This document shows positions 20,788 to 45,503 of a stretch of DNA of 64,000 nt, in pieces; positions within the stretch are counted from its first letter, which is position 1; each line of letters opens with the position of its first letter. The stretch comes from Setoptus koraiensis (lineage: Eukaryota > Animalia > Arthropoda). The DNA is taken from NCBI GenBank assembly GCA_048013815.1, contig CM106586.1, positions 4,774,001 to 4,838,000 of the forward strand, read 5' to 3'. The position numbers and the translations under genes were made by a program. The notes beneath the pieces were generated by a model, which was given only the letters and a program-made list of their open reading frames with translations, was not told where the DNA came from and searched no databases.

Positions 20788-22797
20788 GCATAACAAGCGT
20801 GTGTATTGAATCTGATCAATGTTGGTGGCTGGATTTGCGCTGTCGAGTTGGCGACAACGCAAAACAAAGACAACGCGCGCACTAATAACAATAACAATAA
20901 TCAGTATATCTGAATTAGTTGCGTCCGTAAATGTCTGCCATGTCAGACCCACGCGCGAGGGCATAAAAGCGAATGGGGCCCGCTTGTTATCTTGTAATGT
21001 GGCTTGTTGGCGCCTCGAGAGAGGCAGAGCGAGAGAGTGTTGCCGCGACAAGTGCCACTATTCAGCCATTATATGGGGCGCCGCTGTTGTTGTTGTTGTA
21101 GCTCGATTATTATATTTTCTTTGCGTCTACTTGGCCGTATTATGGCTGTTGTTGCAACACAAACACACTGGTTAGGCTCGTACAACACAAGAGATAATAG
21201 AAGGGGCAACATTGTTGGAGAACATCTTTGCACAGTGTTGTTTGTGCGCCAAGAGAGGGATAAAAATAACGAGAGTGAGAGAGAGAGCGAAAAACAAACT
21301 CATGGGCCCACTCTTGACACCGATGCAACATTACGTAACATTTACCGGCGACACATTTATCACTGGCTACACCTGTTTATAATCTTGATTATTGCGTAGC
21401 TACGGCCGCCGCGGCTTATTTGTGCCGCCGCTAATACATGCCAATACAACGCATGATACGGGGGGCCCCGACCATGAGTCGCTGCTGCACGCGTTTGCAC
21501 GTGTCGGCGCAAACAGCTTGTCGCTCGCTGCCATCTTATCGCTGTTCCGTTGCCTTTCGTTATTGTGGGCCCCAACGCTCAGCCGGCTGGCTATGCAAAA
21601 TCTGTTGTTTCGTCGCTATTCAATTCAATTCGCGATAGGCGCATATTTTCCGTAGCACACGCGCGGATAAATAGTGCAAAATATCCAATACCAAAAACAA
21701 CACAATGTGTGTGAATATCGCCAACAATCTCGCCTCTCGAGCTTGGCCAAAATGCCAAAATGGCTACGCCCACGTGCGATCTTAAAATAGACGCAAACAA
21801 TGTGCTAGAGATAGGTGGCGACACGGATGTGGCAGCGGATAAAAGTGTGATCATTAGTGGCGCTAACAAACGGCCTCAGCACGGCATCAGGCCCAATGTG
21901 AATTTTTGCCACAAATTTTGCTACGAGGCCAGCGGCAACGCTCGCCACATTTCGCTGCCCACGCAGCCAAATTCGAGCCCCACAAACTGGGCACCGAATG
22001 GCCAATTTCGAGTGGCTCCGTCGGGTGAGACTCTCACCGTGAGAGGCTGGCGCAGAGCTGGCTGCATCCATCACGGGCGGCGCTTTTCGCTGCTTTCCGG
22101 TTTGAGGCCGGCAAGCCAACGGCTGCATCGCGCTAAAGCTGACCCCGTCTGTGCAACGGGGTTGCCAAGGTTTCCAAGGTTGCTGGCCACGGTGCTCCAG
22201 CGCGCCCTGTGAGCCCTGCGAGCCGTGTGAGCCGTGTGAGGGCAATGGGGGCCCCAGTGGCGGCCAGAATGTTTGTGATCGATCACTTGTGTGTGTGTGT
22301 GTGTGTTGTTTGAGTGTGTCAACAAATTGAAACAAACACACACACGGCGGCGGCCAAAATGAGCAACGCTGGCCCCAATTGCATGATTGGGGCCAGCTCT
22401 AACCGTGCAATCATCTGGCCACTGCTCGTGCTGGCCTCACTTTGGAGCTCGCCGGGGACCGGCGCCGGCCAGACGCTATGGGCCATGGGCTCATTGGGGC
22501 CGGCTCACCTAAGCAAATAGACACACGGATGGCAAACAATGCTGACGATGATGAACATTATTATTAGCATTGCCGCTGCACGCGGCAGCCAGGCCAATCG
22601 CACTGCTATTATAACACACTGGCAAGACAACAATACACCTATATCTATATTACACCTGTCCACTTGGCCGTGGCTGGCCCCGCAAGGCGCGCCCACAAGT
22701 AAGTGGGCAGCCGATGCCAACTCTGCCCCGCAATTGCTGGCCGAGTATTGCCACTGTCAGTGGTGCCAGTGGCAATACTCGGCTCGCCACAATTGGC

Positions 22798-22893: not shown

Positions 22894-25752
22894 TGGGGCC
22901 CGATTGGCGCAAGTTGGGTGGCGCAATTGGGCCCAATTAGCCGAGTGCTGCACTGGCTGGCTGGCCGACTGCCCTCTAGTGGCCAGTGGGCTCACTAGAA
23001 CTGGCCCTCACAAGTGTCAGCAACACAATTGCTGACAACGCCGTGGCTCTCAAGTGCTGTGTAGGTCAGGTGACTTGAGCCGACAAGCTCAGGTATGGCG
23101 AGTGTATTGTTGTCAATCAGCTGTTCGGCTTGTTGGCCTCTTGACGGGCCTGGCGAGCGCGCATTTATCGGGCCAAACAAGCTTGCGAGTGGCCGACGGC
23201 AAGACGCGATGACGAATGTTCGAGCGAGTTTCGAGCCGCTCGAGCTACTACACTTGCAACAATGCAAGCCAAACGATGATGCGATGATGTAATAAGGGGC
23301 CCGTTGTTGGTTTTCGCTGGCAGTTGTCGCTGTTGCTTGTTGACGCCAATATATACGACGATATGCGGCCATATACGATACTATTTGACCACGTACCACT
23401 GTTTGGCTTATCGCTCAACGCGTGCATATAGCGCGTGCTGTATGGGCAATGGACGATAACAATGGCTTGTCGTCCATTGGTTGGTGTGCCCAAGCCAGCC
23501 GAAGCAGCTCGCCAGCACACAAACAAACAGATAACGATTATCATTTGTGGATCAGTTTGCCGCAATTAGTTACATAAGTAGTTACATAACGGCCGACAGG
23601 GGCAGCTTACAGTCGCATTGTGAACGACACACTTGCCGACAGAGTGTGATTTTTGGTTTTTTACACAAACATTAATGGATGCTCGCTCACATTCCCCGTC
23701 AGTATAGTCAGAGTAATAGCATAATATAATACTGGCCAGATATATAGCAGCAGCAGCCGGTATGTGGCTAGTAGCGGCTAGTATCCCCCTGCTGGCCAGC
23801 GCAAAAACGAAATGGGGCCCCAGCTAATAATGAAAGCTCTCGCTCTTTTATATAACGTATAAGCGGATCAGACTGTGGTCATCAGAGACAAGTAAACACT
23901 TGACTGTTATTAGTGACGCCACCTACAGAGTGATACATCAATTGAGCAGTGTTATTTAAGCCGGCCAGCTACACTGTATCTGTGGAGCAATTGCGGGCCA
24001 CTGGCACGCTCGCCGGGTACAGTCGCCGGGCCGAGTCGCCGGGCCGAGTCGCCGGGTAGGCTGACCAGGTAGGCTGGCAACTGGTAGCTCGTTGTGTGAG
24101 GCGCAAGTTGTAAGTGATTGTGGATTATATCGTCATCTCATCTCGTTTCATGTAACCGTCATAGAGAGTGTGATATTATTGTCTTTATTTGTTGTTGTTG
24201 CTGCTGGCCGCCACGTCTTATAATTGTGTTATATTGCATTATAAGACCAACTGGGTTGTCTATTATTATTACTATTATTATACACATTACGCACATTACG
24301 TAATACACTACTGATACTGATTGAACTAACGAGTGAGCGACTAACTGGCTCGCTGGCTGCCAGTGTCAGCCAGCGTGTCAACATGAGCCTGTGACGCAAC
24401 CCGCTTGATTTGCCTAACTAACTTTGCCTGCCACTGGCCAACAAATAACTAACTCACCTGTCGCATTACTGGCGAGCTTATCGCTGGCGCTGATTGAAAT
24501 TGGAAATGCCCAAAATTGGACGCTGGCTTGTTTTTGTCGTCTGTTTGTTGGGGCCCAACCACAGACAAACCGTGCCAATATCAGCAAGTTAATTGAGGCC
24601 GCGCACGCTGCCAGTGATCCATCAATGCATATATCCATATATTGCCATATATTGCCATATATTGCCATATATTGCTATATGTGCACACAAATGTATACAC
24701 CCGAAATGCATCGATTGGTATTAAGCTCCGCACAAATCCCCTCGTTGTTGCGCTGTCTCGTGTGGGGCATAATTTGGCCGCTGGTTTGCTCTCTGGCCGC
24801 CACAACTACATTATGTATTTCTGTTTATCCGTATATCTGTCGTTTGTAGAGAGTAGATAGTAGATTCATATATACACAGCGCGTATATTTGAATAGCTCA
24901 CTGGTCAATGGCAATAAACTCGTGTCAAACTGATTGATCAGTGGCCAGATTACTATGGCACATTGTATAATGATACACAAACAGATCGACCGAGCAGATA
25001 GCGCCTAGCGGCCATTACTGGCTATTAGTGGCTTGGCATGTTGCAAGTTATAGCAACTACCAGTTAGTCACACACAATTACTTTTACTCTAACTTATTTA
25101 TTAGTTACATAATCGTGCCAGTATCACTACTAGTACTACTAGTACGATGGCATTAGTTGGCATGCACACTCGCTTGGCGCTATCTACCGGTAAATCTCAT
25201 CATCATGGCTACATATTCATTATCATACCCGAGCTAGAGCGTACCTGTGCCAGCGCACTTGCAAATTGAAATCGCTTATCTAACGAACCGATCAAGCCAA
25301 TCGATCACATTTGATTTATCGCGGGTCCACTCATTGACCTCATATATTCTCATCTTTCCACTGTCTACTGCGAGCGAAATTGGCCCCATTTTGCCAGTAT
25401 CGTCTCGACAGACGATCACAAAATCCTTGCCTCTAGCAGACTGTACTGTACAGTAGGCAATAGGACAAATTAGGATAAATTAATAATGTATTACCTGTGC
25501 GTTGCAACGTGATGCAACGTTGCTCAAATTGCTGCTGATAAACTAATCTCTCTCTATGTTTGTTTTGTTTATTCTCGTGCCCATCACACGTTCACGCGCC
25601 AATATAATAATATTGACAATATTCATGTGAATATTCACACATATTCACAAATTTAATTCAATTTCAAATTCATGGATTCATCGCGTAATTGCATTCATTG
25701 CAATTGTTATGGCATCACAAATGGCCTCTAACTCGCAAATGGCAACTAACAG

Positions 25753-25998
25753 CGGATTGCAGTTTCCTATTGGCTAATGCACAAATAGTCGATTATCCCA
25801 TTGTGTACTGCTCAGAGACTTTTTGCAAAATATCTGGCTACAACAGGGCCGAGGTGATGCAAAAATCTTGTCGCTGCAGTTTCATGTATGGCGAGCTAAC
25901 GGACAAACAAACCATAACGCAAGTGGAGCAAGCATTGGACCAGCATGCGATGGAACAATTTGAGATATTGTTGTACAAGAAGCAAAATCCGCAAAATC
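25753..25998 (+). CDS. eag: Eag K+ channel, first traceable coding exon (PAS domain, N-terminal half)
   Basis: Encodes [50 protein letters not shown]...EILLYKK, matching the Eag PAS domain. Acceptor ctaacAG at 25751-52, donor GTAAGT at 25999, phase 1/1. Confidence 0.95.
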
Positions 25999-28900
25999 GT
26001 AAGTAAAATAACAGTATGATAACAGTATAATAACGATATAATTATAGTATGATATGAATGTTGTGTCGGCTCACGACAGGCATCGGCTCACGCAAGCCGA
26101 TTGAGCGTGACAGTTTGTGTCAACTCGAGTTTGTCACCTGAGCACTCACCTGACGCCAGTCACAAACAATAACAATCAACAGCAACAACAACAACAGCAA
26201 CAACAACAACAACAACAAACATTCGCATCAACAACAACAGCAATCAGTAACAACGACCTAACACGACAACACTAACACAACATAACAACAGCAGCAGCAG
26301 CAACAACCGAAATAGCCAAATAATCATTGTAGTAAAACTTTTACAAGTGTCATGATGACACAAAGTTTGCATATTTATACATTGTTTGCGCTGTGCGTGA
26401 GTGGCACACGATTGCGCAACATTGTGCCAGATTATGAGCACATTATCCGCACATTAGGTTATGTAGGTGCGCAGCGATATTGGTACATGGTTGATATAAC
26501 GGTTATAACAGTTATATGCATATATAAATAGATAGATGTCGCTGGTGCGACAATTGTGAAAAAGTGAAGTTTTGCGCCACAAGTCACAATCAATTAGTTT
26601 GTGTGCTCGTGCAAGTTTCGTGCCGGCACACTGCAAACTGCTAATAATATTACATAACAGCACCAGCAACAACAACCGGCTCAATATCGGCATCGTGCGA
26701 CCCAATGTAGGCGTGTTGTCGCTGGTATCATTGTTGTTGTTGTTGTCGCTTGTGTGTGCTCATGTCAGCGACAACAACAATAATATCACTGCGATTATGT
26801 AATAATTGGATTAGACGTGCATTCAATTTATACTCTCTGGTCTTGACACTGTGCCCTTCTGTTCTGTGCCCTTCTGTTCTGTGCCCTTCTGTTGTGTGCC
26901 CTTCTGTTGTGTGCCGAGAAAGGTCAGCGGCCATCGCTGGAGTGCGTTTGTGCATGCTTGATTAGTGTTGGGCGGCGGCCGTAATTTGATAAGTCAAAAA
27001 CATATGCTAATTATTGGCACGGCCAACTGGTCACCAGTGAGCCATACGATGACACGAGCCATACGATGACACGAGCCATACGATGACATGAGCCATACGA
27101 TGAAATGAGCCATTTAACTGGCCGTCGATGGGCAGCTTAAAAACTGCTACTATCGCCGCTCCACTAATTAATATCACTGTTACACGTGTAGCCAATGGTG
27201 CGATACTGTCGCACCGATAGCCAAACAACAAAAGCGAGCTCGTTACCAACAAGATCGTTAGCGAGCTTGTTCCGCGTTGCACGTGGCGCCACCAGCTAAC
27301 AGGTTGGCTTGTTGCGGCGACAAGTGTTAGCAACCTGTGTGCATTTACGCTAATTTGCCTTATATTGCCGCACACACACACACACACATAGCGCATTACG
27401 TAACACGGTGTATATTACACAATGCACGTTGCGCCTAATATACACGTTACATAACATACACGTTACATAACATACTCGTTACATATGCACGTTATATATA
27501 ACGTGCACGTTATGCAATAGAGAGCACAACGAGTATTACGCCTGTAAAAACACGCCTGCCACGAGCTCTCTCTCTCTCTTGTCAATGAGCGTCACATCCA
27601 GCGACACGCACTGTCTATTTAGTGTCACGAGTCAGCTGACTGGCCGGCCGGTTGGCCTCGCATTGGCCTCGCATTGGCTAATCGCCCTTGGCCCAAATCC
27701 GGACTGGCCCAAATAAAGATTTGCTCGCAAATGCAATCGCATTGGCTGCTCGCTCGTCCGGCCCCCAGCTAACGAGCGGCCCGCGGCACAGCGACACCGC
27801 GCTGACAAGTTGGCCACTGTAATCCAATATGGCACACAGATAGACATGACATTTGTAACTGATACGTTCACACAGTCGCATGATCAGTCACCGATATCGC
27901 CCACTTTGCGCAGCGCTCATTTCGACACACTGTGCTGCCGATGTGATGTGATTGTGTGCTGTGCGAAATCACATCGGCGCCACCAGCGATATTGGCAAAA
28001 TCAATATCAACATCAGCATCAGATATTGCGTCAATCTCAAACTGTCGCCAAACATACACAGTGACATAGTGAGCCGCCATTATATCCGCTGGCCGGCTGG
28101 ACATTGGCCCCGTGCAACAATCGCTAGATAAACAATAACACGTGCAGCGTGCGAGCGTGCCTAATTTGCATAATGGACCCAGCTAACACACGCTGCACAT
28201 TTAGCTGCGTTGCCGCAAATGTCGGTGCATTAGCACCGCCGTCAGAGGGCCCGCCGACTGACCTCTCATTGGTTGCCGCTGACAACCAATGAGAGCCAAC
28301 AAAAACAATAACACACAAAAACAATTATTTTTTGCATTTTTGCCCGTGCATGCACGCCACGTCCGTCAACACGACCGAACCGGGCCGGTCGCACGGGCCG
28401 GCCGGCCGGGCGGTCGGGCCGTCGGCCAGCGGATATAAAGGCATGTACGGGCTGGCCAAGACCGACGCGGCAACGTGCGGTCATTCGCAATAAGACTTGT
28501 TTGTCACTTTTGTGTTTGTGTGATATATGGCAGCGTGTGTGTGTGTGTGTTTAATTTATTTGTTTTCTTCAGCTTAGCGTTGCCAATCATTTGATGTCAG
28601 CCGGTCACTCAGTCAGTCAGTGGGCCGGCCGTTGCCGTGGCTGTTGTGCCATTTTGGGGCCAGTGGGGCCGGCTGGGGCCCGCGCACTGGTTCGCTGGTG
28701 CGTGCATCTCGCCAATGCCAGTGGGCCAGTTGTCTGCTCGACTGCTCGGCTGGCCGCTGGCCGGATAAATGCGACGTGGTGGCCCCGTTTAGCTGACTGG
28801 CACGAGTGGCTTACGTGAGAATGCGCCGCAACGTCACACGTTACGTGCGCGGGCCCCGCGAGCTGGACAAGTCGTGATAAAAGTGCACGTTTGAAGCAAA

Positions 28901-29772
28901 TTTATGACAGTTGCTTGCTTCACCTGTCCTGTCATGTTTGTTTGCGTTAGTGCGAGTGTGCGTGTGTGTTGACTAACATATATCATTATTATGCCATTAC
29001 TGTTAATGGCGCCCATCCAAATAATTACATAATTTTTTGTTTGCTTGCCTCAGTTGTTGCCGGTTGTTGCCGGTTGTTGCCGGTTGGTTGCCGGTTGGTT
29101 GCTGGCAAGCCAGCAACAACAACAACTAAACGCAACGCCTTGCTGGCTGCAACAACTCATTTGCGCGTGTCAACATTGCGCCTGATTAACAATTCAATGC
29201 GGTCGATATGTCAATACGCTAATGGGTTTAACTGCTACTGGCTGGCCCCAATATGGCCCCCACACTCTGTGCCATACTGGCGATTGTCTTGATTTTATTG
29301 CGCTTTTTATATTACATTGCAAGCCCCCATTTGTTTGTCTGTTTGTCTGTTTGTTTGTTTGTTTGTCTGTTTGTCTGTTTGTTTGTTTGTTTGTTTGTTT
29401 GTTTGTTTGCTCGTTCGTTTGTTTGTCTGTCTGCAAGAATAATGTCACCTCGCTCACCTGTCTGCCGTTGGTCTGCCCACGGGACCCGTCCAAATACAAA
29501 ATGTAATACAACAAATCGCAAGCCGCACAAATGTTTTTTTCACAATAATCGGCTTATTGATTAGCCCTAAACTCATTTCTGCTCACTTGCTTATTATTCG
29601 CAATTCGCACTTTGTAGCAACATTGTAGCTGTTGCCAGATAAATACGGATAGCCGCTACCCACTGGGCGATACCCAATACCCAGCACTACCTAATACCTG
29701 CCTCATTGAGGGGCAAATCGCCTGACAGCATGACGCAAGCATGCGTGCAACTCACAAACAAACATTTAGTTG

Positions 29773-29844
29773 TTAATTATGCACATCAGTTATTATTAAT
29801 TATGCACATCAGTTATTATTAATTATGCATATCAGTTATTAATT
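29773..29844. repeat. 23-bp tandem repeat x3 (TTAATTATGCACATCAGTTATTA)
   Basis: Direct tandem copies inside the eag intron. Confidence 0.9.
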
Positions 29845-30139
29845 AGAACATTCAGTTAGCCATTCCTTTTCATTTGTTTCACCACTGCTCATTTCATCAA
29901 CTGCTCATTTATTTTGTTATCAATGTCGCCCCCCGTCAACAAACCCGAACCCGTCACCCTCCTGTCACCAATTGGATTGTCCATTGAACGCACAACCGCC
30001 CGCCCGACTTGCGCCTCGATCGCTGATGCCCGGCCAACGCTGATGCCCGGCCAACGCTGATGACCGGCCAACGATGATGACGATCACTGTTAATTAATTA
30101 TAACGTGTCACTGAACGTGTTGCAACGTGACTGTGTCAG

Positions 30140-30358
30140 ATCACAGTAAGTGCTCACTCAGTCTCATGTCGGGATTTAGTGATAGTGATCAAATGACTAA
30201 GAACAAATTCACAAGTTTGGCCGATCTCACAAAGCAACACCAACAAATGCAACAGCTACAACAACAACAGCACCACCAACAACAACATTTGAATATTAGC
30301 TCTACTAGTAACAATAGTCATAGCAGTAGTAGTAGTGGTAGTAGCGGAAGTAAAAACT
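30140..30358 (+). CDS. eag: Putative eag cassette exon A (73 codons, Q/H/S-rich), phase 1/1
   Basis: Acceptor gtgtcAG at 30138-39, donor GTGAGT at 30359, length 219 nt, open in the frame joining the flanking PAS exons. No homology support. Confidence 0.4.
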
Positions 30359-31235
30359 GTGAGTACGTGCAACTAAACTCAATCGCTCAAGCGCTCTCAA
30401 CAATCGAGCCATTCGAGCTGGCGTCATGTAACATCGTGTAATAATCGTGATGTAACAACCATGTAACAACAAATGGCTGTTGTTGAATTAGGACTCAAGT
30501 CAAGTTACGACTCGTTGTCAGTGTCGTAACGAGTTACGACACTGACCACGCGTCTCACACACGCTGCCAGTGATAGCCAGTGATTTATCTCGGGCTGACC
30601 CATAATTTGCGATTCAAACTTTGGCAACGATTGCAGAGTCGCCAATGCAAAAAGTCGACTCAATTTACGCGATTTGCAATTTAATTCTCAGTTGGTTGTC
30701 ACTTAGTTTTCGGTTCGGTACAAAGTTTGAGAAAGTTTTTAAAACTTTCACACATTTGCAACTTGCCATCCAGTCTCACTGTATCTCGGTACATGCATCT
30801 GGGTGTACACTAAATGTACATTAGGACATTTAGAGATATTCATTGAGATACATTGAGAGATGTGTTAGATAATTAGAGTGTGTTCTCGCTGGCGATGTCG
30901 TGGGTGTCAGAGTTGACAAAACAAGTCCATTCGAGATAATGACAGTGAGCGAGCCAAAACAATGAGAGTGCAGGAGAGTGAAACTGCCAAAACAACTCAA
31001 ACTGCCAAACAAACTGCGTACGACATAAATTTCAATTAGCATACACTATTACCACTAATGAGCGTATCAAACTATAATAATAATGATAATAATATCACTG
31101 ATAAGCCAGCGAAACTAATTCATTTCTAACACACATACACACCATTGTAAACAATGTCACGTGTTGTCGTTGATGCATTCACGGCGGCCGCGAACGAGAC
31201 GCGCCCTTGTTGTGGCACCACCACCACCAACAACG

Positions 31236-31287
<52 letters not shown>

Positions 31288-31302
31288 CTACAAATCAATT
31301 AG

Positions 31303-32055
31303 TGTACGATCAAGACAACAACGGTCATCAACAACAACAGCTCATTGGCAACAGCAACAGCAGCGGCAGCTTCCGGTTGAAATCACTCGCCAATGAATCG
31401 TCGTTCAAGTCTTTTTCGTGCAACGCCAAATCGAAGCAGCAACAAAAATTGATCGCTCTGGATGGTTATTGCGGCAAGACAGCGGCCAAGTGGCCACTAG
31501 AGGGGGCGCTCAATGGGCCAACTAGGAATAAATCAGACACAAATAATGGTGAAAATAAAAAATCCTCGCCCGTGGCAATAAACAATGATACCGTTGTTTC
31601 GACAAACTTGACAAGCTTGACAAACTTGGCCAATGCAGTGATGGGCCAATGTGATCAGGGTGAAATGAAGGCACAAGCGCAACATGAAACAGTATCAACA
31701 GCAACAAAAATGCTGCTGTTTGCGTCGTCGGCTCAGTCGCATCAACGGCCGGCCAACAAACTGTTGGATTCGTATCTCTCTACAGGCGACAATGCAAACA
31801 CGACACTGCAAACCAGCGTCCACCAGCAAACAACAAACAATTTGCTCAACAAATTAGTGCCACCACCAGCAACAACACCACCAACAACAGCAGCAACACC
31901 GACAACAACAGCGACACCAACAACAGCGACACCAACAACAGCGACAGCGACAACGACAACAACGACAACGACACCAACAAAAAATCACGAACAATCACAG
32001 CTGTTCAGGTGTCACAATTTATTGTCGATGAAGGCACATTCAAGTTTTGAAACCA
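31303..32055 (+). CDS. eag: Putative eag cassette exon B (251 codons, N/T/Q/S-rich), phase 1/1
   Basis: Core of the 308-aa ORF 31161-32087. Acceptor caattAG at 31301-02, donor GTAAGA at 32056, length 753 nt; the ORF stops 10 codons after the donor. Confidence 0.55.
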
Positions 32056-32600
32056 GTAAGACACCACAAACCACAACCAATCTCTAGTATGCAAACAGCT
32101 ATTGGTAACCTCAGCTGTAATGAGCCTGCTCGCTATGATAATATCATGTAGCTATACTAGCCATAATAATAACAGCCACTGCTTATTATAAATTTATAGC
32201 GCGACTTGCCGAGCTTGCCGACTTGTGAGCTTGCCGACTTGTGAGCTTGCTAGCATGGCCCTTCAGCGCTTGTCAAGGCGACGTTTATGCCGGCCCCAAT
32301 TAGAGCAACCAGTGTCATGTTAGCGGTTAGTGCCAAGCGATAGATGTCAACAGCAACAATAGATCAACCACGGACAATGATCAAGCAACAATGATCATCA
32401 ATCAATCAATCAAGACAGTGATAACAAAGCTAAACACGTGGTGCCAAACATTGTGGCCTCACTTTTGCGCCTTGCCAAGCACACACAAATCGGCTTAGAT
32501 GTGAATAGATTGCGTTAATTAGCCCCACAAAAAGACAGCAAAAAGACGACAAGACCTAGATTTTACACTGCGCTGCTGCTGCTTGTCGTTGGCTGTCCTT

Positions 32601-32724
32601 GTCGATACAAACTTTGTCGATACAAACTTTGTCGATACAAACTTTGTCGATACAAACTTTGTCGATACAAACTTTGTCGATACAAACTTTGTCGATACAA
32701 ACTTTGTCGATACAAACTTTGTCG
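32601..32724. repeat. 15-bp tandem repeat x8 (GTCGATACAAACTTT), perfect
   Basis: Eight identical units with no spacers. Confidence 0.97.
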
Positions 32725-33872
32725 CCCCAAGGACGGGCCCCACAAAACACGAGCATTGTGCTGCCAATTAGACTACTCATAATAGATTCATAATAATCAA
32801 TCAATAGATACTCATGTTGAGCATGCATGATGCCCGTTCGCTTGCCATTGTCGCCGTGACCCACTTTGCACCCAACACGCGCCGGCCCCATTTGCACGTG
32901 CTGGCGCGCGTTAAAAATAGCACCCGAAACTGGCACAACACAATAGCACCTGTTCTATTTTTGATGTTCAACAGAGGCGACTGTAATAATTTCAACAATT
33001 GTGCCATACGTGCTAATTACGTGCACGCGACGCTTTTTGTAACGTATTGTTTGTGATTATTATTTATTACTGGCGATTATTTATTATTTGCGAGCGCTTG
33101 TTTGTCAACGGGGGCCCCACCTCTCGTTTACTATTGTTAGGCTCACAACTGAGACAGGGCACAGACTGACTGTATGACCGAATACTGCTATGGCACACAG
33201 TTTGGCCAGGCAAGAGTTTAATGAATGACCTACAACAACAAATCTCTTCGGCTGTCACTTGTGACTCGCAGCTTGTTGTGAGCCGAACTGACCTCTCTGG
33301 TTCAATCAGTGAACTAGTGTTTATCGGGTTACTGTTTGTCGCAGGCCCGTCTGCGTTGGCCGCTACCTGAAGCGCCCCCAAGCGCCACTGACACATTATA
33401 ACAGTGTCACTGCTAGTTGGCAGTTGTGCCGCTGCAGGCTGCCTCGTGCTACTTTTCACTTTGCCTTGTGCTATTTTGGCTTGCCGCGTTGCCTGCAAAC
33501 AGACAAAATACGGATAAAATGCGGATAAAATGCGGATAAAATGCGGATGAAATGCGGATAACTACGTATGAAACGCGGATAAAATAAAATGTCTGCGGTG
33601 CTATGGTGCCACGCAGTGCACATAGCAAAGATCATTGCAGCACTAGCGGCAGATTACATGCTAGACGAAGGTGGAAAATAGAGCAAAGGCACTAATTACA
33701 TAATAGCGACAACAAAAAAGAAAACTTGATTTGTGGCACCGTTTCGGCCTGTCCGTTTTGTTTTTGTTTCCGTCTGGCCGCCCGGTGTGTGCCTAGCTCC
33801 GTTCGCGACTCCTCCTGGCGGCCACTGCTTCGTGTCGAGGTTGCACCACAATCACTTGATCATTATTACTAG

Positions 33873-33952
33873 CGTTGCGCAACCATTTTGAGCTGCTGCA
33901 TCCGCTGTTTGTCCGCTCGAACGGTGCACCAGCTCAAAATGGTTGTGTAATG
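33873..33952 (+). ncRNA. Candidate pre-miRNA-like hairpin in eag intron
   Basis: Perfect 16-bp inverted repeat (33880-95 / 33930-45), extending to about 30 bp with G:U pairs and one mismatch. No known miRNA recognised. Confidence 0.3.
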
Positions 33953-35781
33953 AGCTTGTTTATACCCCCCTCTTATAATGAGCCTAATTATTAGTTAGCT
34001 GTTTGTTGCCCATACCATCGATCTACGTCCACAAGCCGCACAAGTCCCGTTATAAGTTATGAGTCTATCTATGGCTAGTTGTCAGCTGGCTAGTTGCAGT
34101 TTCGGCCAGTGCCCGTTTGGTGATTTAAATTTTTGCCCCGCTGTTGCTACTGTCATTATCAGCTGACCGGCATCAGCTGATAGTAACAGTAACCAGCAAC
34201 TAGCCCTAACTTTTATTATTATTATTGTTTTGTGTTTCATCTATCTATTAGTATTATCTTGATAAGAAAATTAGTTAGAAAACAACTCGCCAGCAGCTAC
34301 TATAAATTGATATCTAATAATTAGCCAGTAATTGTAGTTGCGCAACCGTGGATGTTTTGTTGAGCTTGTCACAGACAAATCGATTGATAACTGAGCAAAC
34401 TTTACTGGACGTTGAACAAAACACAGTTTGATTATATGTTTGAGTTAAGTTATTTCAACGCCAACCATCGCCACCCAATTAATGATACTGTTGCTCGTGT
34501 TGCATCGCTATTGTTTGCTACGTGTTTCATCACAACAATGTGACCTCTCTCATCCGGCAATAACCAATGAAATAAGATCAAGACACACAAATAACAATCG
34601 AGGCGTCTTGATTGTTTGTTTGTTGTTGTCGCAATCGGTTTGTTTGGGTCTGTCAGCCCATCTCAATCCGATGAATCTTCTGAATGATTGCCACTAATGA
34701 CAGTGTGACGCCTCGCAAAAATTGTATTGTCACGCCAATCATCCAATCAAACTGCCTCTCAAACAATTGCTGCCAATTAGGCCAATTAAATTGCCATCAA
34801 TCAAATCTCCGGGCAGCATGCAATTTGCTGCACCTTGCCAATTGTTACCCAGCTAACGGGTCTCGTCTTGATTCACTGCTAACCTGACCTCATTATAATT
34901 ATTGATTGATCAATCGGTGCAGTTATTAATTATACAGCCAGCATTCCATTATAGGCTAGATAGAGTAGAGCTTTGCCTCCCGAATTCGTCCAAATCTCAA
35001 ATCTCTCTCCTTACCTATGCTGCTGGTCGCTAGATACCCAACTAGATACCCGGCTAGATACCCGGCTAGATACCTGGCTAGATAGTCGGCTAGATGCTGG
35101 TCGTAAGAGGATGCAAAAAATCTCAACTGCAAAGATTTGTCCATTTGTCTGGCCACAGTATTTGATTTGCACTGATGCAGAGCAAAAAACAGCTAAATGG
35201 CCCATGCTGTGGAATTGACAAAAATACAAAAAACAATTTTAACAACAAATTTTTCTTTTGAAAACTCCACGTCAGGCGCAACACGCCAACTATTGTATTG
35301 TACAAGTGACTTGTTAATTTAGTTGCTGACTGAGCCAATCAACGAATAAATTAGGCCAATCAAGGCGCCACAAAAATAGACGACGATTAAATTAAAGCTT
35401 CATAAATTTGTGTAGATAAAATGAATTGCGAATTGCGCTTAGGCAGGCTGCTTGCAATCAATTGAATGCCAATGACACTAGCTGCTCCATTTATGTAATA
35501 TCTCATTGTAATCACTAAACTCTTACGTCTCATTTTATCCTCTCATCCAAATCGATGCTGTTTGCCTATTTGATTATTGATATCGATTGATGTCAATGTC
35601 GCTGGGCGCCCTATCAATCAATCGCGCGCGCACTTGCAACCGGATATTGGAAAAAAATTATGCAAACGACGCCACAAACGCATCTCACGCCGACCTCACC
35701 GTTTTTGATGGAAACAACCCGCGAAAACCCATGCGAAAATCCATGAAAACAAAAAACTCAATCAAAAAATATTTAAATCAG

Positions 35782-36041
35782 GCGTGCCAATATGGCTCCA
35801 GTTGCACATAGCGCCAATTAAGAATGAAAAGAATATAGTAGTATTATTTTTGCTAACATTTCGTGATATAACCGCCCTTAAAAATCCAATTGAAGACGAT
35901 TCAAATAGAAATTTAAGTAAATTTGCCAGATTAGCCAGGAGTGTCACAAGGTCTCGCTCTACGTTAGCATCACAAATATCGTCCAATTTACCAATAATAA
36001 AATCTCCCGAAATCAATGTCAGGACATCGCATTTTGGTCAT
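35782..36041 (+). CDS. eag: Eag exon: PAS C-terminal strands (PAC) and linker
   Basis: VPIWLQLHIAPIKNEKNIVVLFLLTFRDITALK...LSKFARLARSVTRSR; acceptor aaatcAG, donor GTAAGT at 36042. Confidence 0.95.
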
Positions 36042-36190
36042 GTAAGTCGCCACTCATCGCATGTCTATGCCAGCAGGCCGGGTGATATGATATTTTTGGC
36101 ATAGATGATGATTTCTGGACAATATTCACTATTATCGGCACTGACTAATTTTATTCTTGTCCATTTCACACTATTATCTGAATTTTTCCG

Positions 36191-36260
36191 AATCTTTGCG
36201 AATCTTTGCGAATCTTTGCGAATCTTTGCGAATCTTTGCGAATCTTTGCGAATCTTTGCG
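36191..36260. repeat. 10-bp-unit minisatellite (AATCTTTGCG)x7 in eag intron
   Basis: Seven identical units. Confidence 0.97.
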
Positions 36261-36305
36261 AAATTCGCCAAATGTTGCTAAATTCTGCCGAATGCCAAAT
36301 CGCAG

Positions 36306-36514
36306 CTCATGACCCTAAATGCCGAGGTATTGCCCCAGTACCGACAGGAGGCACCCAAAACTCCGCCCCACATTCTATTGCATTATTGTCTATTTAAGAC
36401 CGTTTGGGATTGGGTAATATTAGCTCTAACCTTCTACACAGCTATTATGGTGCCATTCAATGTTGCCTTCAAAAACAAAACCGCCGAAGACGTTAGCTTG
36501 CTCATTCTCGACAG
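36306..36514 (+). CDS. eag: Eag exon: pre-S1 and S1
   Basis: [48 protein letters not shown]; cgcAG acceptor, GTGAGT donor at 36515. Confidence 0.97.
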
Positions 36515-37097
36515 GTGAGTCTACTTATTGGTATACGCTCACATCGGATGCCGATGTATCTCTCATATATGCATGCGATACAAGCATAATCTGCCCATCT
36601 GATTGCATGATTTGATTTGGGCAAGTCGAGCCACTGAAGTGTCATGACTTGACGGGCGCGACTACGCGTGAATATCCGGCGCGTATGTTTGTTTTGGCCT
36701 CATTGCAGCGAAACTAATCGATTACTATCCATATCTATCCATTGATCTATTCATGCTTGCACACTGCACATCGCATTGTTGCGCAACACACACACACACA
36801 CACACACACACATGTCCACAACAATCTTTTGCCAACGACAACACCGACAACAACGACAACAACGACAACAACGACAATAACGACAACAACGACAACTCGC
36901 CGCCGAAATTGAATTGACCGAATTGAATTAAATTGAACGGATCGGATCGTGTCGCATCGGATTGGCTTGGGTCGGATGCGATGAACGTGCCGCGAAACGC
37001 ATCGGCCCATTCAATGGAAATGGAAATTGAAATGAATTTGCGCAACGCAACAAAACGCAACCAATCGCAATGGATGCGCGGCGTGCAAATAAAATAG

Positions 37098-37284
37098 TAT
37101 TGTCGATGTTATATTTGCCATCGATATCTTGCTCAACTTTCACACAACATTCGTGGGACCCGGTGGAGAGGTTGTGTCCGATCCAAAATCTATCAGGATG
37201 AATTACCTAAAGACCTGGTTCCTCATAGATCTGTTATCCTGTTTGCCTTACGATGTTTTCAATGCGTTTGGAGCCGCCGAAGAA
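37098..37284 (+). CDS. eag: Eag exon: S2-S3
   Basis: [54 protein letters not shown]; aatAG acceptor, GTAAGT donor at 37285. Confidence 0.97.
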
Positions 37285-37764
37285 GTAAGTGAGCGCCAAT
37301 ATCTAGCCAGCACAGATTGTTGTTGCTCAGTGGGCCATCGGTGGCTGTCACTGACGTCAACCTATCCCTATTTGAGGTCTATTTGAGGGGTCCGCTCGAG
37401 CCAGTCGGTTATCGCTTGATCGGCGCTCGCTGGCCGGTCCGGGCCGGCTCGTTATCGCGCAACGTGAATCTTGATTTTAATCAACTTTTTCCTCATTTCG
37501 TTTCGTCTTTGTACCACCGGTTCATAACTCGCCGCTGTCGTTTCGCTGGCTCGTTTGCTGGCTCGTTTGCTGGCTCGTTTTCTGGCTCGTCTGCTGGCTC
37601 GTCTGCTGGCTCGCGTTTGCTGGCGAATCTCTGGAATACAATACAAATTTTTGGCAAATTTGTGATTCGTCAAATTGCTAAATTGTCGAATTGTTGAATT
37701 GTTACATTTAACAATTTATTTTGGATTTAAAAACTGTAACCGTTCGACTGGCGCCGCAACGCAG

Positions 37765-38004
37765 CAACAAGGAATCGGCTCGCTTTTCAGCGCCCTCAAA
37801 GTAATTCGTCTGCTGCGATTGGGCAGAATCGTCAGAAAATTAGACAGGTACCTAGAGTATGGGGCGGCCATGTTGCTGCTGCTATTGTGCTTTTACATGC
37901 TGGTGGCGCATTGGATGGCCTGCATATGGTACCATATAGGGCGCACCGATGGCGAGTACGGCATGCGACACAGTTGGGTGTGGAAAGTGGGCAACGTCAC
38001 GGGC
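37765..38004 (+). CDS. eag: Eag exon: S4 voltage sensor and S5
   Basis: [35 protein letters not shown]...AHWMACIWY; cgcAG acceptor, GTAAGT donor at 38005. Confidence 0.97.
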
Positions 38005-38177
38005 GTAAGTAACTTTTATTATAAGTAAATTATTAAATTAATTAGCGATCAACTTTAATTAGGGCGCGCTCATTACGACGACTAACTGCTGTGTTCACTT
38101 GTGTGCCCATTTCATCCATTCTGCTGGCTGTTTTATCCGTTCTGCTGCGCATTTTATCCACGCTGCGCCGCATGCAG

Positions 38178-38367
38178 AATCCCTTTGAGCCCATCAACAA
38201 AAACATGACTTTCCCGAGAGAACTGATCGGCGGTCCAGTGAGATTCACCATGTATGTTACGTCATTGTATTTCACCATGACTTGCATGACCAGCGTGGGC
38301 TTCGGCAACGTGTCGCCCGAGACGGATAATGAGAAAATATTCACGATAATCATGATGGTCATTGGGG
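38178..38367 (+). CDS. eag: Eag exon: pore helix, GFG selectivity filter, S6
   Basis: [39 protein letters not shown]; tgcAG acceptor, GTAAGT donor at 38368. Confidence 0.97.
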
Positions 38368-38593
38368 GTAAGTGGCGCCGCGAGTGCATTTTATACTATC
38401 ACTATATTACTACTATATTATCACTGGTATCATTACTGTGAATTTGTGAATTCGTGAATTTGCATTCACAAGTTCCAGTTCGCGTTTCCACGACACCTCA
38501 ACTAATTCCAAACGTTTTATCCGGCATCCGACATCCCATATCCGTCGTCCGTCGTCCGTTGTCCCTTACGCGACGTATCGCGCCCCCGAACAG

Positions 38594-39276
38594 CGCTCCT
38601 GTACGCCACCATTTTCGGTCATGTCACCACCATCATACAGCAGATGATGTCGGCCACGGCCAGATATCATGACATGCTGAACAACGTTAGAGAATTTATG
38701 AAATTACACGAAGTGCCTCATACTCTGAGAGAGCGCGTGATGGATTATGTTGTCAGCACTTGGGCCATGACCAAGGGCATCGACTCAAAGAAGGTGCTCA
38801 GTTATGTGCCCAAGGATATGAACGCCGATATTTGTGTCCATTTAAACAGGAAAGTGTTCAACGAACATCCCGCCTTTAGACTGGCCAGCGACGGTTGCTT
38901 GCGCGCCCTCGCCACAGAATTTGTTATGGATCATAGCGCGCCAGGTGATTTGTTGTATCATGTTGGCGAAGTGATTGAATCATTGTGTTTTGTTGTCAGT
39001 GGCTCGCTAGAGGTCATACAAGACGAAGAAGTGGTGGCCATTTTAGGCAAGGGCGACGTATTTGGGGACGCCTTTTGGCAATATCCCGAGCCAGATCCAA
39101 AAGATAATATGAACCCGCCGCCCGAGTATACGTCGACGGCAAACGTGAGAGCGCTCACCTATTGTGATTTGCATGCCATTAAACGGGAGGGATTGATGCG
39201 GGTCTTGAACAGTCATCGCACATTCAGGACCTCGTTCTCTAACCGGCTCATACTGACCTACAATTTGCGCAACAGG
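38594..39276 (+). CDS. eag: Eag exon: S6 end, C-linker and cyclic-nucleotide-binding homology domain
   Basis: [17 protein letters not shown]...[16 protein letters not shown]...GKGDVFGD...[11 protein letters not shown]...LTYNL (intrinsic-ligand motif); aacAG acceptor, GTAAGC donor at 39277. Confidence 0.97.
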
Positions 39277-39383
39277 GTAAGCCACCAATCCACTCAACAA
39301 CTGATAATCATAATAATTTCATAATATTATAAATTATGATATGATAAATAATACTATTGAATCAATGTTTTCGCTCCCGTTAG

Positions 39384-40036
39384 ATAATCTTCCGCAAGGT
39401 GGCCGACCTGAAACACGAACAAGAACTGGACGAAATGCAACAGAATCATCCGCAACCGGAAATAAGCCAAAATCACATGATCAGACGGTTGGTGTCGAAA
39501 TTCCGCAAACCGTCCGACGCAACAGCGGCAACGCTACTCGGTAGCGCTAGCTCCAATACCCTCCAGGTACCGCCCGCTCACTTGCCCACCATCAGCGGCT
39601 CGGTCAGTATCGACATAGATCCGTCGGCCACCACAAAGCCGGGCGACTCCGCTACGGGCGGCCAGCGAAGCGGCACCTCTAGCCTAGAGGGCGCCCATCA
39701 TCAGCCCGTGGCATTGCCCAATATTCAGCGCAGCCTCATGGGCAGCAAGAGCCGCTGGTCGCAATTGGTGGCGTCGGCGGCCGCGGGTGCCGGGTCCGCT
39801 GGCGCTGCGGCGGCGGCCGCCGCCGCCGCAAAGCCGGCTCAGTCAACTTATACGGCGCCAACATCAAACCTTCGCGCCCTGTTGGACATACAAGGCGAGG
39901 ATGGCAGCGGCTCGAACTCGGGCCAGAACGCCGAGCAAGCGGGCGCCAGGCGCGACGGTGACGACGAGCTCGACGAAAATTACCTTCGTCCCGGCGGCAA
40001 GGGTCACCAGGCCATTCTGGACAACATGGACAAAAG
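39384..40036 (+). CDS. eag: Eag exon: post-CNBHD region
   Basis: IIFRKVADLKHEQEL...NHMIRRLVSKFRK, similar to Drosophila Eag; gttAG acceptor, GTGAGC donor at 40037. Confidence 0.9.
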
Positions 40037-42238: not shown

Positions 42239-43729
42239 ATGGCTCCGATGAAGCTGCTCACCATTGTGTGTCTGGCATGTCTACTTTACACGTCCAACGC
42301 CCAGGACTTCAGCAAAGAACAATGCGTTTCATCAGTGAAAACACTGAAGACAATTCCTGAATTTCAATCTTTTGCCGATCTAGCGCTTCGCTCTGGGAAA
42401 AGTGAGATTCTCAACAGGTGCATTCGCAGCGTTGATGGTCTTGGTGATATCCGGGCATTGAACGATATTGTCGAGCTAGCTGGATCAGTACATTCTGTGT
42501 GCGAGCCAGACTTTACAGATCAATTGCTCAAATTAGACAAACAATTAAAAGTCAATGCGAGCAATGGAAAACATCTGAGACGCAAACAAAAGAATAGACT
42601 GACTCGCTTCTTGCGACTCTTTTCAGGCCAAGTTGCATTGACTTGCAAGAAATCTTTGGCACAAAAATTACAATCGGCAGAGGATGGTAATGCTGAAGTA
42701 GTCGCAAGCCTGGACACAGTGATCGCCATGTCGGAAAAGCAGAAGGCCCAACGCAACGAAGATTGGGCTAAGAATCTACCTAAAGGCTCGCGCAAATTGT
42801 TGATTTTTGCTATGAAACACACTCCAAATGTTTTCACAAAAGTAGAAAATCTCATACTGACTGAGTCACTGAAACCCACGCCAGAATCTCAGTTTTCTAT
42901 TGGTATGACATTGAGCTCGGAGAGCATGGTAGAAGAATTTGTTAAAACCAAAAAGGCGTGCATGCTGATTGATGAATTTGCACAAAGCTCGATATACACG
43001 ATTCCCCGACTGGCTTGGAGAGGATATTTGGCACAAAACGAAGCTGAAAACTTGGATAGAAGCCTGATCGAAGATTCAAGGGTCCAGAAATGGATCAAAG
43101 CCGTGCAATTCTGTCAGGGTGTTCTTCTGATTGAGGCCAATCTAGATTTGGAGAGTGACGTCGCTGATGAAATTGAAGAAGAAGTGCTGAATGATGAAAG
43201 TTTATTCAACCTCAATATGTGCAGAAACAATCATCCGGATAAAGCGGTGCACAAATTTGAGCAAGCCGACAATTTCAAGTCGTTTGACGCCGATCTCAAA
43301 TGTTACACTCAATCGAACGGACTGACCGGATGGATGCAGAGACGCTTTGGTTCCATGACAGAAAATGCAGTGTCGAAACTTGTGACGGTGAACGTTCTCG
43401 ACGAGTCAATCAGGACGTTGATGGAAAATCAAGAGGACCCGGAAAATGAGGTCCGATTCGGCTCTCTGGCAACCACTGGTCACTCAATGGCAGTCCCAGC
43501 AGCTCATCATGTTGCACATCACGGTCTGCATTTGTTTGGTCTCAGTCATTCTGCTTCGATAGCGGTATACTTTGCATTAATCATTGGAGTTATCATACTA
43601 TTTATCATCGGTATTTTTACATCTGTTAGATCTACCGCTAAACAATATCAATGTAGTCATCATCCACTCCCATCCACTGCTGGGCCAAAAAAAAGATTTA
43701 GCGGAATGACTATTTTTGGCCGATATTAA
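42239..43729 (+). CDS. Intronless orphan 496-aa protein: signal peptide, Cys-containing helical ectodomain, C-terminal TM helix
   Basis: MAPMKLLTIVCLACLLYTSNA signal-like N-terminus; IAVYFALIIGVIILFIIGIFTSV hydrophobic segment; TATA/Inr upstream, AATAAA downstream, and a paralog with a conserved frame. Family not recognised. Confidence 0.88.
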   Translation: MAPMKLLTIVCLACLLYTSNAQDFSKEQCVSSVKTLKTIPEFQSFADLALRSGKSEILNRCIRSVDGLGDIRALNDIVELAGSVHSVCEPDFTDQLLKLDKQLKVNASNGKHLRRKQKNRLTRFLRLFSGQVALTCKKSLAQKLQSAEDGNAEVVASLDTVIAMSEKQKAQRNEDWAKNLPKGSRKLLIFAMKHTPNVFTKVENLILTESLKPTPESQFSIGMTLSSESMVEEFVKTKKACMLIDEFAQSSIYTIPRLAWRGYLAQNEAENLDRSLIEDSRVQKWIKAVQFCQGVLLIEANLDLESDVADEIEEEVLNDESLFNLNMCRNNHPDKAVHKFEQADNFKSFDADLKCYTQSNGLTGWMQRRFGSMTENAVSKLVTVNVLDESIRTLMENQEDPENEVRFGSLATTGHSMAVPAAHHVAHHGLHLFGLSHSASIAVYFALIIGVIILFIIGIFTSVRSTAKQYQCSHHPLPSTAGPKKRFSGMTIFGRY

Positions 43730-43777
43730 AGAGGAGTAGAAAGAGCAAAGTTACATAATCCATTCTTATTTTAAAAC

Positions 43778-43783
43778 AATAAA
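43778..43783 (+). terminator. Polyadenylation signal of orphan copy 1
   Basis: AATAAA 49 nt after the stop. Confidence 0.55.
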
Positions 43784-44258
43784 TCTGTCAAAACCAGGTT
43801 AAAATGCCTTGAATATTTCCGCTAATCCGATGTGAGAAGAGACCATATTCGCCAGTTAATTGTTATAACAAACTTACAAGACTTTCCTTTCACCCATTCA
43901 GAGCTTGGCAGTTTGAGACTGCCAAGCTAGTTCGCTTGTAGAAGAGCGCTATTATCTACCTCTTCTCTATATATGAATATTTCAAGAGATCCTTGTAACA
44001 GGGCGATGGCAGGTGCAATCAAGTCAAGTTAATATCTGCTTCAGTGATCGAAATGAAGCTTTGTCTGACATTTGGCATTGAATTTCTTTCGACAGAAGCT
44101 CTAAATTAAGATCTGATAGTCGTCTTTTTTGGCGAAATCGTCCTATAGCCTATAAGTCACGTCTAGACAAATTCCAGCGACCAGACAGTCGCACGAAAAC
44201 GTTCAAAAATAGAACCACGAGAACGGCTGAAAAATGAAGCTAGCTCGCCGATCCATAG

Positions 44259-44296
44259 TATAAATAGCGGCAGGTTTCTATTGCGAAGCCTCAGTT
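44259..44296 (+). promoter_or_regulatory. Core promoter of orphan copy 2: TATAAATA + TCAGTT
   Basis: Same motifs and spacing as copy 1. Confidence 0.7.
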
Positions 44297-44435
44297 GTTC
44301 TTATAGAAAATAGGAACATATAGAACAATGTTTTTCCAGCAAACTTGAAAAAGTTTAGTTGTTCCATATTTGATTCAAAAAAATAGAAAAAAAAAGTCGC
44401 ATCTAACATAAAAGTTCCCAAATAAAATCATCGAA

Positions 44436-45503
44436 ATGGCTCTGATGCAATTGTTCGCCATCGTGTGTCTGACATGTCTAATTTACACGTCCAACGCCCA
44501 GGACTTCAGCAAAGAACAATGCGTTTCATCAGTGAAAACACTGAAGACAATTCCTGAATTTCAATCGTTTGCGGATCTAGCGCTTCGCTCTGGGAAAAGT
44601 GAGATTCTCAACAGGTGCATTCGCAGCGTTGATGGTCTTGGTGATATCCGGGCATTGAACGATATTGTCGAGCTAGCTGGATCAGTACATTCTGTGTGCG
44701 AGCCAGACTTTACAGATCAATTGCTCAAATTAGACAAACAATTAAAAGTCAATGCGAGCAATGGAAAACATCTGAGACGCAAACAAAAGAATAGACTGAC
44801 TCGCTTCTTGCGACTCTTTTCAGGCCAAGTTGCATTGACTTGCAAGAAATCTTTGGCACAAAAATTACAATCGGCAGAGGATGGTAACGCTGGAGTAGTC
44901 GCAAGCCTGGACACAGTGATTGCCATGTCGGAAGAGGCCCAACGCAATGAAGATTGGGCTAAGAATCTACCGAAGAGCTCGCGCAAATTGTTGAGTCTTG
45001 TTATGCGATACTCTCCAAATGTCTTCACAAAAGTAGAAAATCTCATGCTGACTGAGTCACTGAAACCCACACCAGAATCTCAGTTTTCCACAAGTGTGAC
45101 ATTGAGCTCGGAGAGCATGGTAGAAGAATTTGTTAAAACCAAAAAGGCGTGCATGCTGATTGATGAATTTGCACAAAGCTCGATATACACGATTCCCCGA
45201 CTGGCTTGGAGAGGATATTTGGCACAAAACGATGCTGAAAATTTAGATAGAAGCCTGATCGAAGATCCAAGAGTCCAGAAATGGATCAGAGCCGTGCAAT
45301 TTTGTCAGGGTGTTCTTTTTATTGAGGCCAATCTAGATTTGGAGGGTGACTTGGTTGAGAAAATTAAAAAAGATGTCCGAAATGATGGAAGTTTATTCAC
45401 CGTCAATCTGTACAAGAATAATCAGCCGAGTAAAACCGTCCACAAATTTGAGCAAGCTGACAATTTCAAATCGTTTGACGCTGATCTCAAATGTTACACA
45501 CAA
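44436..45503 (+). CDS. Orphan paralog copy 2, 356 codons visible, 3' end lost in the assembly gap
   Basis: Collinear with copy 1 aa 1-358 apart from one 6-nt deletion; open up to the Ns. Confidence 0.85.

Follow-up and report, generated by a model that had tools for sequence, protein, structure and literature searches.

KCNH potassium channels gate slowly under the control of their PAS (eag) domain, which acts through its contact with the cyclic-nucleotide-binding homology domain (CNBHD). We gathered approximately 270 Eag proteins by searching exhaustively with the CNBHD exon and by a word search in which a spider Eag was the query, and measured one PAS loop, between YKKN and P[LIV]W, in the 111 arthropod Eag proteins in which it was measurable. 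Among these proteins the loop spans 2-57 residues; many have two, as in mammals, and the other lengths are 6, 18-22 in flies, 27 in the dust mite, 33 in termites, 37 in tephritids, 49 in spiders and 57 in bees. NCBI isoform sets from bees, termites, spiders, tephritids and the dust mite vary at this one site (P0246, P0204, P0174 and their relatives). Judged from such gene models, an optional PAS-loop exon is a known kind of architecture in arthropod eag, and our literature search found no published description of an arthropod-wide hypervariable eag PAS-loop cassette site.

In the eag gene of the dust mite Dermatophagoides pteronyssinus (isoform X1, P0161, locus L002), the annotated loop corresponds to a 72-nt (24-codon) cassette of phase 1-1, which we checked in the DNA and which sits 4.7 kb into a 7.5-kb intron. 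With a slash marking each splice site, the first PAS exon ends ...ACA C/GTAAGT, the cassette runs from AG/GA to TCA G/GTAAGC, and the second PAS exon begins AG/GC. In bees (Bombus pyrosoma, Apis cerana and Hylaeus anthracinus; NCBI models), the isoforms come from one gene and differ only at the PAS loop, which in Bombus pyrosoma is KT, SAPRET or a 57-residue form. These protein isoforms imply two stacked symmetric cassettes, the arrangement that the two candidate exons described below would also have. Flies carry a constitutive insertion at the same point, which is 19 residues long in Drosophila (P0005 and P0258), in agreement with the short insertion mentioned in a first-pass annotation of the present locus, and 18-37 residues in Musca, Glossina and tephritids.

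The window, by which we mean the whole 64-kb stretch of DNA analysed here, contains an Eag-type (KCNH, Kv10-type) potassium-channel gene on its + strand. All searches were run exon by exon. In tblastn, the mite Eag proteins P0161 and P0170 tile positions 25728-39557 in channel order, on the + strand and through the CNBHD, and Pfam matched a cNMP_binding domain within the gene. A six-transmembrane voltage-sensor and pore module is followed, in order and on one strand, by the CNBHD, which identifies a channel of the KCNH/Eag family; the top matches of the channel exons are Eag, not Erg or Elk, and the best exon matches come from Dermatophagoides and Brevipalpus. Upstream of the first PAS exon (window 1-25700), a tblastn search with the conserved PAS-cap (MPGGRRGLVAPQNTFLEN...) did not find the first coding exon of eag, which may sit outside the window or be diverged. 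The sole match of that search was weak and covered 8 residues (GRRGL; 21404-21427).

The PAS domain is split between two exons, referred to here as PAS1 and PAS2. The Pfam domain PAS_9 was found in both halves, and KCNH1/KCNH5 structures were matched over 79 residues of the first (E=2e-30) and 63 of the second (E=3e-17). PAS1 ends with ...YKKQNPQN plus a single C (AAAATC/GTAAGT at 25998), and PAS2, which begins CAG/GCGTGCC at 35782, supplies the last two bases (GC) of the split codon. When joined, the two exons encode an Eag PAS domain that is free of gaps and whose loop has six residues, as determined by alignment to KCNH1 residues 103 and 106, and this skipped form agrees residue by residue with mammalian KCNH1/Kv10.1 (PDB 4LLO, 4HOI, 5K7L and 5J7E) across the junction. 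Because the junction is gap-free, skipping of any cassette would yield a normal channel. The intervening intron (25999-35781) is 9,783 nt long and of phase 1. It shares its position, its phase and the C/GC split codon with the dust mite intron, and skipping results in an Arg codon (CGC) in both species.

Within this intron, the first-pass annotation had pointed to a same-strand ORF of 308 codons whose protein-like part would start at a phase-1 AG, end at a phase-1 GTAAGA just ahead of the stop, and be included or skipped without a frameshift. We found each of these elements in place. The ORF (31161..32087, + strand) belongs to a stop-to-stop open frame of 322 codons (31119-32084), and the candidate exon, B, would begin after the AG at 31301-31302 (AG/31303) and end before the GT at 32056-32057 (32055/GTAAGA), ten codons ahead of the stop. 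Both ends are of phase 1 in the frame of the ORF, which matches the flanking PAS exons, and the length of B (753 nt) preserves the frame in either case. Together with a second candidate cassette, exon A, every possible junction gives a sense codon: R on skipping, H from PAS1 to A, L from PAS1 to B, L from A to B, C from A to PAS2 and S from B to PAS2. In its position (KCNH1-equivalent residues 103/106, in a phase-1 intron), symmetry, divisibility by three and freedom from stops, B has the properties of an arthropod PAS-loop cassette. Coordinates are collected in Table 1.

Table 1. Positions in the window of the eag PAS exons, the candidate cassettes and the associated splice signals.
Feature	Position	Strand	Basis or remark
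PAS1, eag exon with the first PAS half	25753..25998	+	Pfam PAS_9 E=9e-11; matches KCNH1 residues 25-103; phase-1 end
PAS2, eag exon with the second PAS half	35782..36041	+	Aligns to KCNH1/KCNH5 from residue 104-106
Candidate cassette exon A, 219 nt, phase 1-1	30140..30358	+	Donor ACT/GTGAGT; codon score; AG-free zone
Candidate cassette exon B, 753 nt, 251 codons, phase 1-1	31303..32055	+	ORF, phases, splice sites, codon score
Proposed B donor, GTAAGA	32056..32061	+	Context CCA/GTAAGA
In-frame stop, reached when the B donor is unused	32085..32087	+	ORF listing
AG-free, G-poor 102-nt stretch before the B acceptor, TTAG/TG	31197..31302	+	Includes (CAA)22, 31228-31293
AG-free zone, 277 nt, PAS1 acceptor	~25472-25751	+	AG scan
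AG-free zone, 278 nt, exon A acceptor	~29858-30138/30139	+	AG scan
AG-free zone, 298 nt, PAS2 acceptor	~35480-35780	+	AG scan
AG-free zone, acceptor 37098	~36707-37096	+	AG scan
AG-free zone, acceptor 37765	~37403-37763	+	AG scan

In size and sequence, B differs from each of the described insertions. B alone adds 251 residues, which lies outside the annotated range of 2-57 and is more than four times the length of any annotated cassette at this site. Like the dust mite cassette, B is of phase 1-1, and the dust mite loop is Ser-rich and low-complexity; however, the two are 72 and 753 nt long, show no sequence similarity, and represent an annotated mRNA model and a candidate, respectively. The bee inserts lengthen the loop by 4 and 51 residues and are basic, whereas B is rich in T, Q and N. 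The fly insertion, as in Drosophila obscura (P0258), shares its insertion point with B, between YKKN and (T)P[LI]W, but is short and conserved across flies, whereas B has no conserved motif or relatives. In the mammalian KCNH1 structures, only two residues (RT) stand at the point at which the mite insertion would measure 73, 251 or 324. The figure of 324, which results from inclusion of both candidates, had been proposed previously as a count of disordered residues. The geometry holds and the junctions are sense, and disorder of B is consistent with the composition of its translation (63% S/T/N/Q/P/G/A) and with the lack of a Pfam match.

We considered whether the B frame exceeds what chance would provide. 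The rival explanation is that the ORF is non-functional, a chance or very young frame in a T-poor, A/C-rich, microsatellite-seeded intron, with an AG and a GTAAG in phase by accident, and is not present in mature eag mRNA at meaningful levels. The composition of the region (17% T) favors this explanation, as do the CAA/ACA repeats that flank and fill it and are open in all frames: approximately 270 nt of the ORF consist of (CAA)22 and an ACA/ACG-rich stretch (31860-31980), both uninformative, the latter within a Thr/Pro/Ala low-complexity tail (31857-31980). However, the informative core of B (~31302/31303-31856; 185 codons) is non-repetitive, and its three + frames contain 0, 9 and 10 stops, an asymmetry that argues against an accidental frame. 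Introns simulated in full with block-wise second-order Markov chains gave a longest + ORF of at least 251 codons with a probability of 0.02-0.05, so that chance can supply such a frame in 2-5% of cases, and one of at least 322 codons with a probability of 0.005-0.007; these estimates are conservative because the model was trained on the ORF itself.

Codon composition also bears on whether the frame is accidental. We trained a codon score on the real coding sequence of the window against its non-coding DNA, and the log-odds per codon for the B frame came to 0.16 over its whole length and 0.21 over its core. The two shifted frames gave -0.13 and -0.03, true exons 0.12-0.17, and 186 control open frames of at least 70 codons -0.08±0.10. 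The B score is thus 2.3-2.9 SD above the control frames and is specific to one frame, which speaks against non-functionality. Base composition by codon position resembles that of the disordered C-terminal eag exon, with more G at position 1 than at position 2. On the side of a chance frame, synonymous-codon usage alone does not discriminate B, the signal being too weak in this genome.

The donor provides a further measure. The 9.8-kb intron contains only 13 GTRAG sites, and 3 of the 13 close a phase 1-1 open segment of at least 45 nt, namely those of B, A and a small repeat-borne segment. In control sequence, chance phase 1-1 "cassettes" of 200-390 nt occur approximately once per 5-10 kb, a frequency that favors the accidental explanation, but the longest in ~60 kb of control strand sequence is 393 nt, and B is approximately twice that length. 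By our own estimate, a GTAAG donor in the one required phase and within 11 codons of the stop would arise by coincidence with a probability of ~0.01-0.03, and the presence of cassettes in homologous introns elsewhere likewise argues against accident. Taken together, these measures suggest that the B frame is probably coding or very recently coding, although they do not settle the question at that level, and we regard a non-functional ORF as possible but somewhat doubtful.

Splice signals were compared with those of the eag gene itself. Its eight homology-defined donors comprise GTAAGT (five), GTGAGT, GTAAGC and GTGAGC, and the GTAAGA of B is near the consensus, with an A at +6 that is seen in 0 of the 8 proven donors. 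The eag acceptors generally lack a pyrimidine tract, and PAS2, for instance, is preceded by an A-rich run ending ...TTTAAATCAG; the acceptor of B is therefore not abnormal in this respect. A more distinctive signal is the exclusion of AG upstream of acceptors. Counting both strands, the window contains just five AG-free zones of at least 250 nt, all of which lie on the + strand inside eag. Four of the five end exactly at homology-verified acceptors (25753, 35782, 37098 and 37765), and the fifth stops exactly at the candidate acceptor of exon A. Across the long-intron acceptors of eag together with exon A, the AG-free zones measure 199-387 nt, or roughly 200-390 nt. A congener (contig L003, described below) keeps the lengths of two of them, at 315 and 389 nt versus 298 and 387 nt here, in introns that barely align. 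In the long introns of this genome, very long AG-exclusion zones seem to have been selected as marks of true 3' splice sites.

The AG-free stretch ahead of B is shorter than at every long-intron acceptor of eag, and because it contains only 7% G and holds the (CAA)22 repeat, its lack of AG is largely compositional. By the genome's own standard, the B acceptor is weak as judged from its sequence, which lends B no positive support and adds to the case for a non-functional ORF. Weak splice sites are often found at alternative exons, however, and for that reason the short zone does not exclude B. An internal acceptor at 31786 offers a good pyrimidine tract and a 270-nt exon; its AG-free zone is only 48 nt, and its use would leave the upstream open frame unexplained. 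Another acceptor, at 31199, does not have the required phase and was rejected. A perfect tandem repeat of 15 bp x 8.4 (TTGTCGATACAAACT; 32599-32724), located in the intron 0.5 kb past B, makes an AG-free zone of 170 nt that is not an acceptor.

Exon A, upstream of B, has a different profile. Its acceptor is very likely genuine given that a 278-nt AG-free zone ends exactly there, and its in-frame codon score is 0.31 per codon, against the -0.08±0.10 of control open frames. On these sequence measures, exon A is much better supported than B. A perfect donor lies six bases past the acceptor (CAG/ATCACA/GTAAGT, with GTAAGT at 30146), and the same acceptor could also serve a 6-nt micro-exon of phase 1-1 (30140-30145) that would change the loop by two residues, which recalls the 12-nt micro-exon (SAPR) inferred for bees. 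The encoded residues of exon A bear a faint resemblance to the fly Eag insertion motif (C..L.S.F/G).

Homologues of B were sought in several collections. No homologue was found by Pfam, by a word-indexed search with the core among proteins of 170-540 aa, or in the ESM Atlas; BLAST matches of B to Eag C-termini involved Thr/Pro low complexity only and were rejected as homology. Searching with PAS2 recovered a congener (Logan run SRR33593474, contig L003), in which PAS2 is 96% identical at the nucleotide level, exons overall are 96-98% identical and introns are mostly unalignable, as well as a clade of more distant relatives. The congener contig ends 1.4 kb upstream of PAS2, short of the B region. 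Among proteins of 170-540 aa from the congener, no orthologue of B was recovered; shorter fragments were filtered out and contigs break at the flanking repeats, and we therefore treat this as a weak negative. The missing homologue and the missing congener orthologue both count in favor of a non-functional ORF. In a sister species (contig L001; 71% nucleotide identity in exons), the disordered eag exons are already unalignable, and two more distant eriophyoid contigs (L008 and L004) are too diverged or too short for a comparison of the B frame. Neither PAS1 nor an ORF resembling B was present in the 3.1 kb that L008 contains upstream of PAS2. A single GTRAG occurs in the 3.2 kb ahead of PAS2 on that contig; it is at the contig start (L008:1-52; GGAA/GTGAGC), after a phase-1 open frame, and may be the end of the last PAS-loop cassette in that relative.

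Sequencing reads were also searched. No RNA run among those searched contained the stretch. Over 30100-36099, the reads obtained came from one genomic DNA run, with even depth across the intron, and from three runs of other species that match only CAA/ACA low complexity and not even PAS2. Apparent read joints in this interval were rejected as repeat artefacts, with sides of 21-30 nt and no GT..AG ends.

The coding character of the ORF could also reflect an independent, lineage-specific transcript on the same strand, nested in the eag intron, either as an orphan gene that begins with the ATG at 31173 or as an alternative initial or final exon. The ORF is coding-like with that ATG in frame, a TATA-like run lies near 31073, and there are other orphan genes in the window (42239-45503). 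However, the in-frame ATG comes after another at 31154 that is out of frame, and no AATAAA or ATTAAA was found between the stop and 33500, whereas three AATAAA hexamers (31527, 31554 and 31577) fall within 55 nt inside B. Furthermore, the in-phase GTAAGA ahead of the stop would have to be the improbable coincidence estimated above, and RNA contigs containing the stretch were not found. We consider a nested transcript unlikely.

The same hexamers, together with a frame that stays open to a stop 10 codons beyond the donor, would fit a use of B as a terminal exon only, in which a transcript spliced into 31303 and left unspliced at the donor would be translated as far as the stop at 32085, giving a pore-less protein made of PAS1, with or without A, and B, an outcome like the truncated Eag isoforms. 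The first-pass annotation had suggested such a soluble, pore-less product of read-through; the stop is real, and the product would follow from it by inference. Against this alternative, the AATAAA signals are all upstream of the stop with none after it, half a PAS domain is unlikely to fold, and no RNA run among those searched contained the stretch, the reads obtained being DNA or from unrelated species. We regard use as a terminal exon as very improbable.

The reading that we prefer is that B is a real optional coding exon of mite eag, possibly used with another acceptor such as that at 31786, to which we assign a probability of roughly 45% on the basis of the sequence. This reading is plausible because the codon pattern and the avoidance of stops are specific to one frame, a consensus donor stands in phase just before the stop, exon A lies nearby and cassettes in this intron have precedent. 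It is open to doubt because neither transcripts nor a conserved counterpart were found in the data searched, the acceptor is weak, the size is unprecedented, the surroundings are of low complexity, three AATAAA signals fall inside the exon, and the congener gave a weak negative. As an optional exon, B would follow the better-supported A as another cassette, this one very large, within the phase-1 intron that lies between the two PAS halves. Skipping of both cassettes would give the canonical PAS domain, and inclusion of B, with or without A, would give approximately 251 (or 324) low-complexity and probably disordered residues looped out from a surface hairpin of the PAS domain. Inclusion of B would leave the PAS fold and the channel frame intact. 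From the contact between the eag domain and the CNBHD, we infer that B might serve as the splice-controlled gating switch or scaffold that had been suggested for it, and any regulation of its splicing would likewise be conjectural. More tentatively still, eriophyoid-type mites might splice a disordered module of 251 residues, or 324 with A, into a Gbeta-Hbeta-type loop of the Eag PAS domain. Such a module would far exceed every other natural insertion in KCNH eag domains, would convert this domain of gating control into a tether or scaffold chosen by splicing, and would mark the extreme of an arthropod-wide hypervariable cassette system.

Massive intron loss has been reported for the genomes of eriophyoid mites (PMC7738191). 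Next to eag in the window, Tor kinase is encoded by one uninterrupted ORF of 2,698 codons (46315-54411), and this intronless ORF fits the reported loss, in contrast to the 10 exons of eag. For annotation of this intron-poor genome, very long AG-free zones are of practical use, in that they mark true acceptors and single out exon A. If B is not real, it usefully cautions that introns poor in T and rich in microsatellites can imitate large in-phase exons. If B is real, it would represent the extreme case of the PAS-loop cassette system that gene models show in mites, spiders, termites, bees and flies, and it would offer a natural experiment that asks how large a disordered insert the eag domain can accommodate and whether such inserts tune gating or recruit partners.
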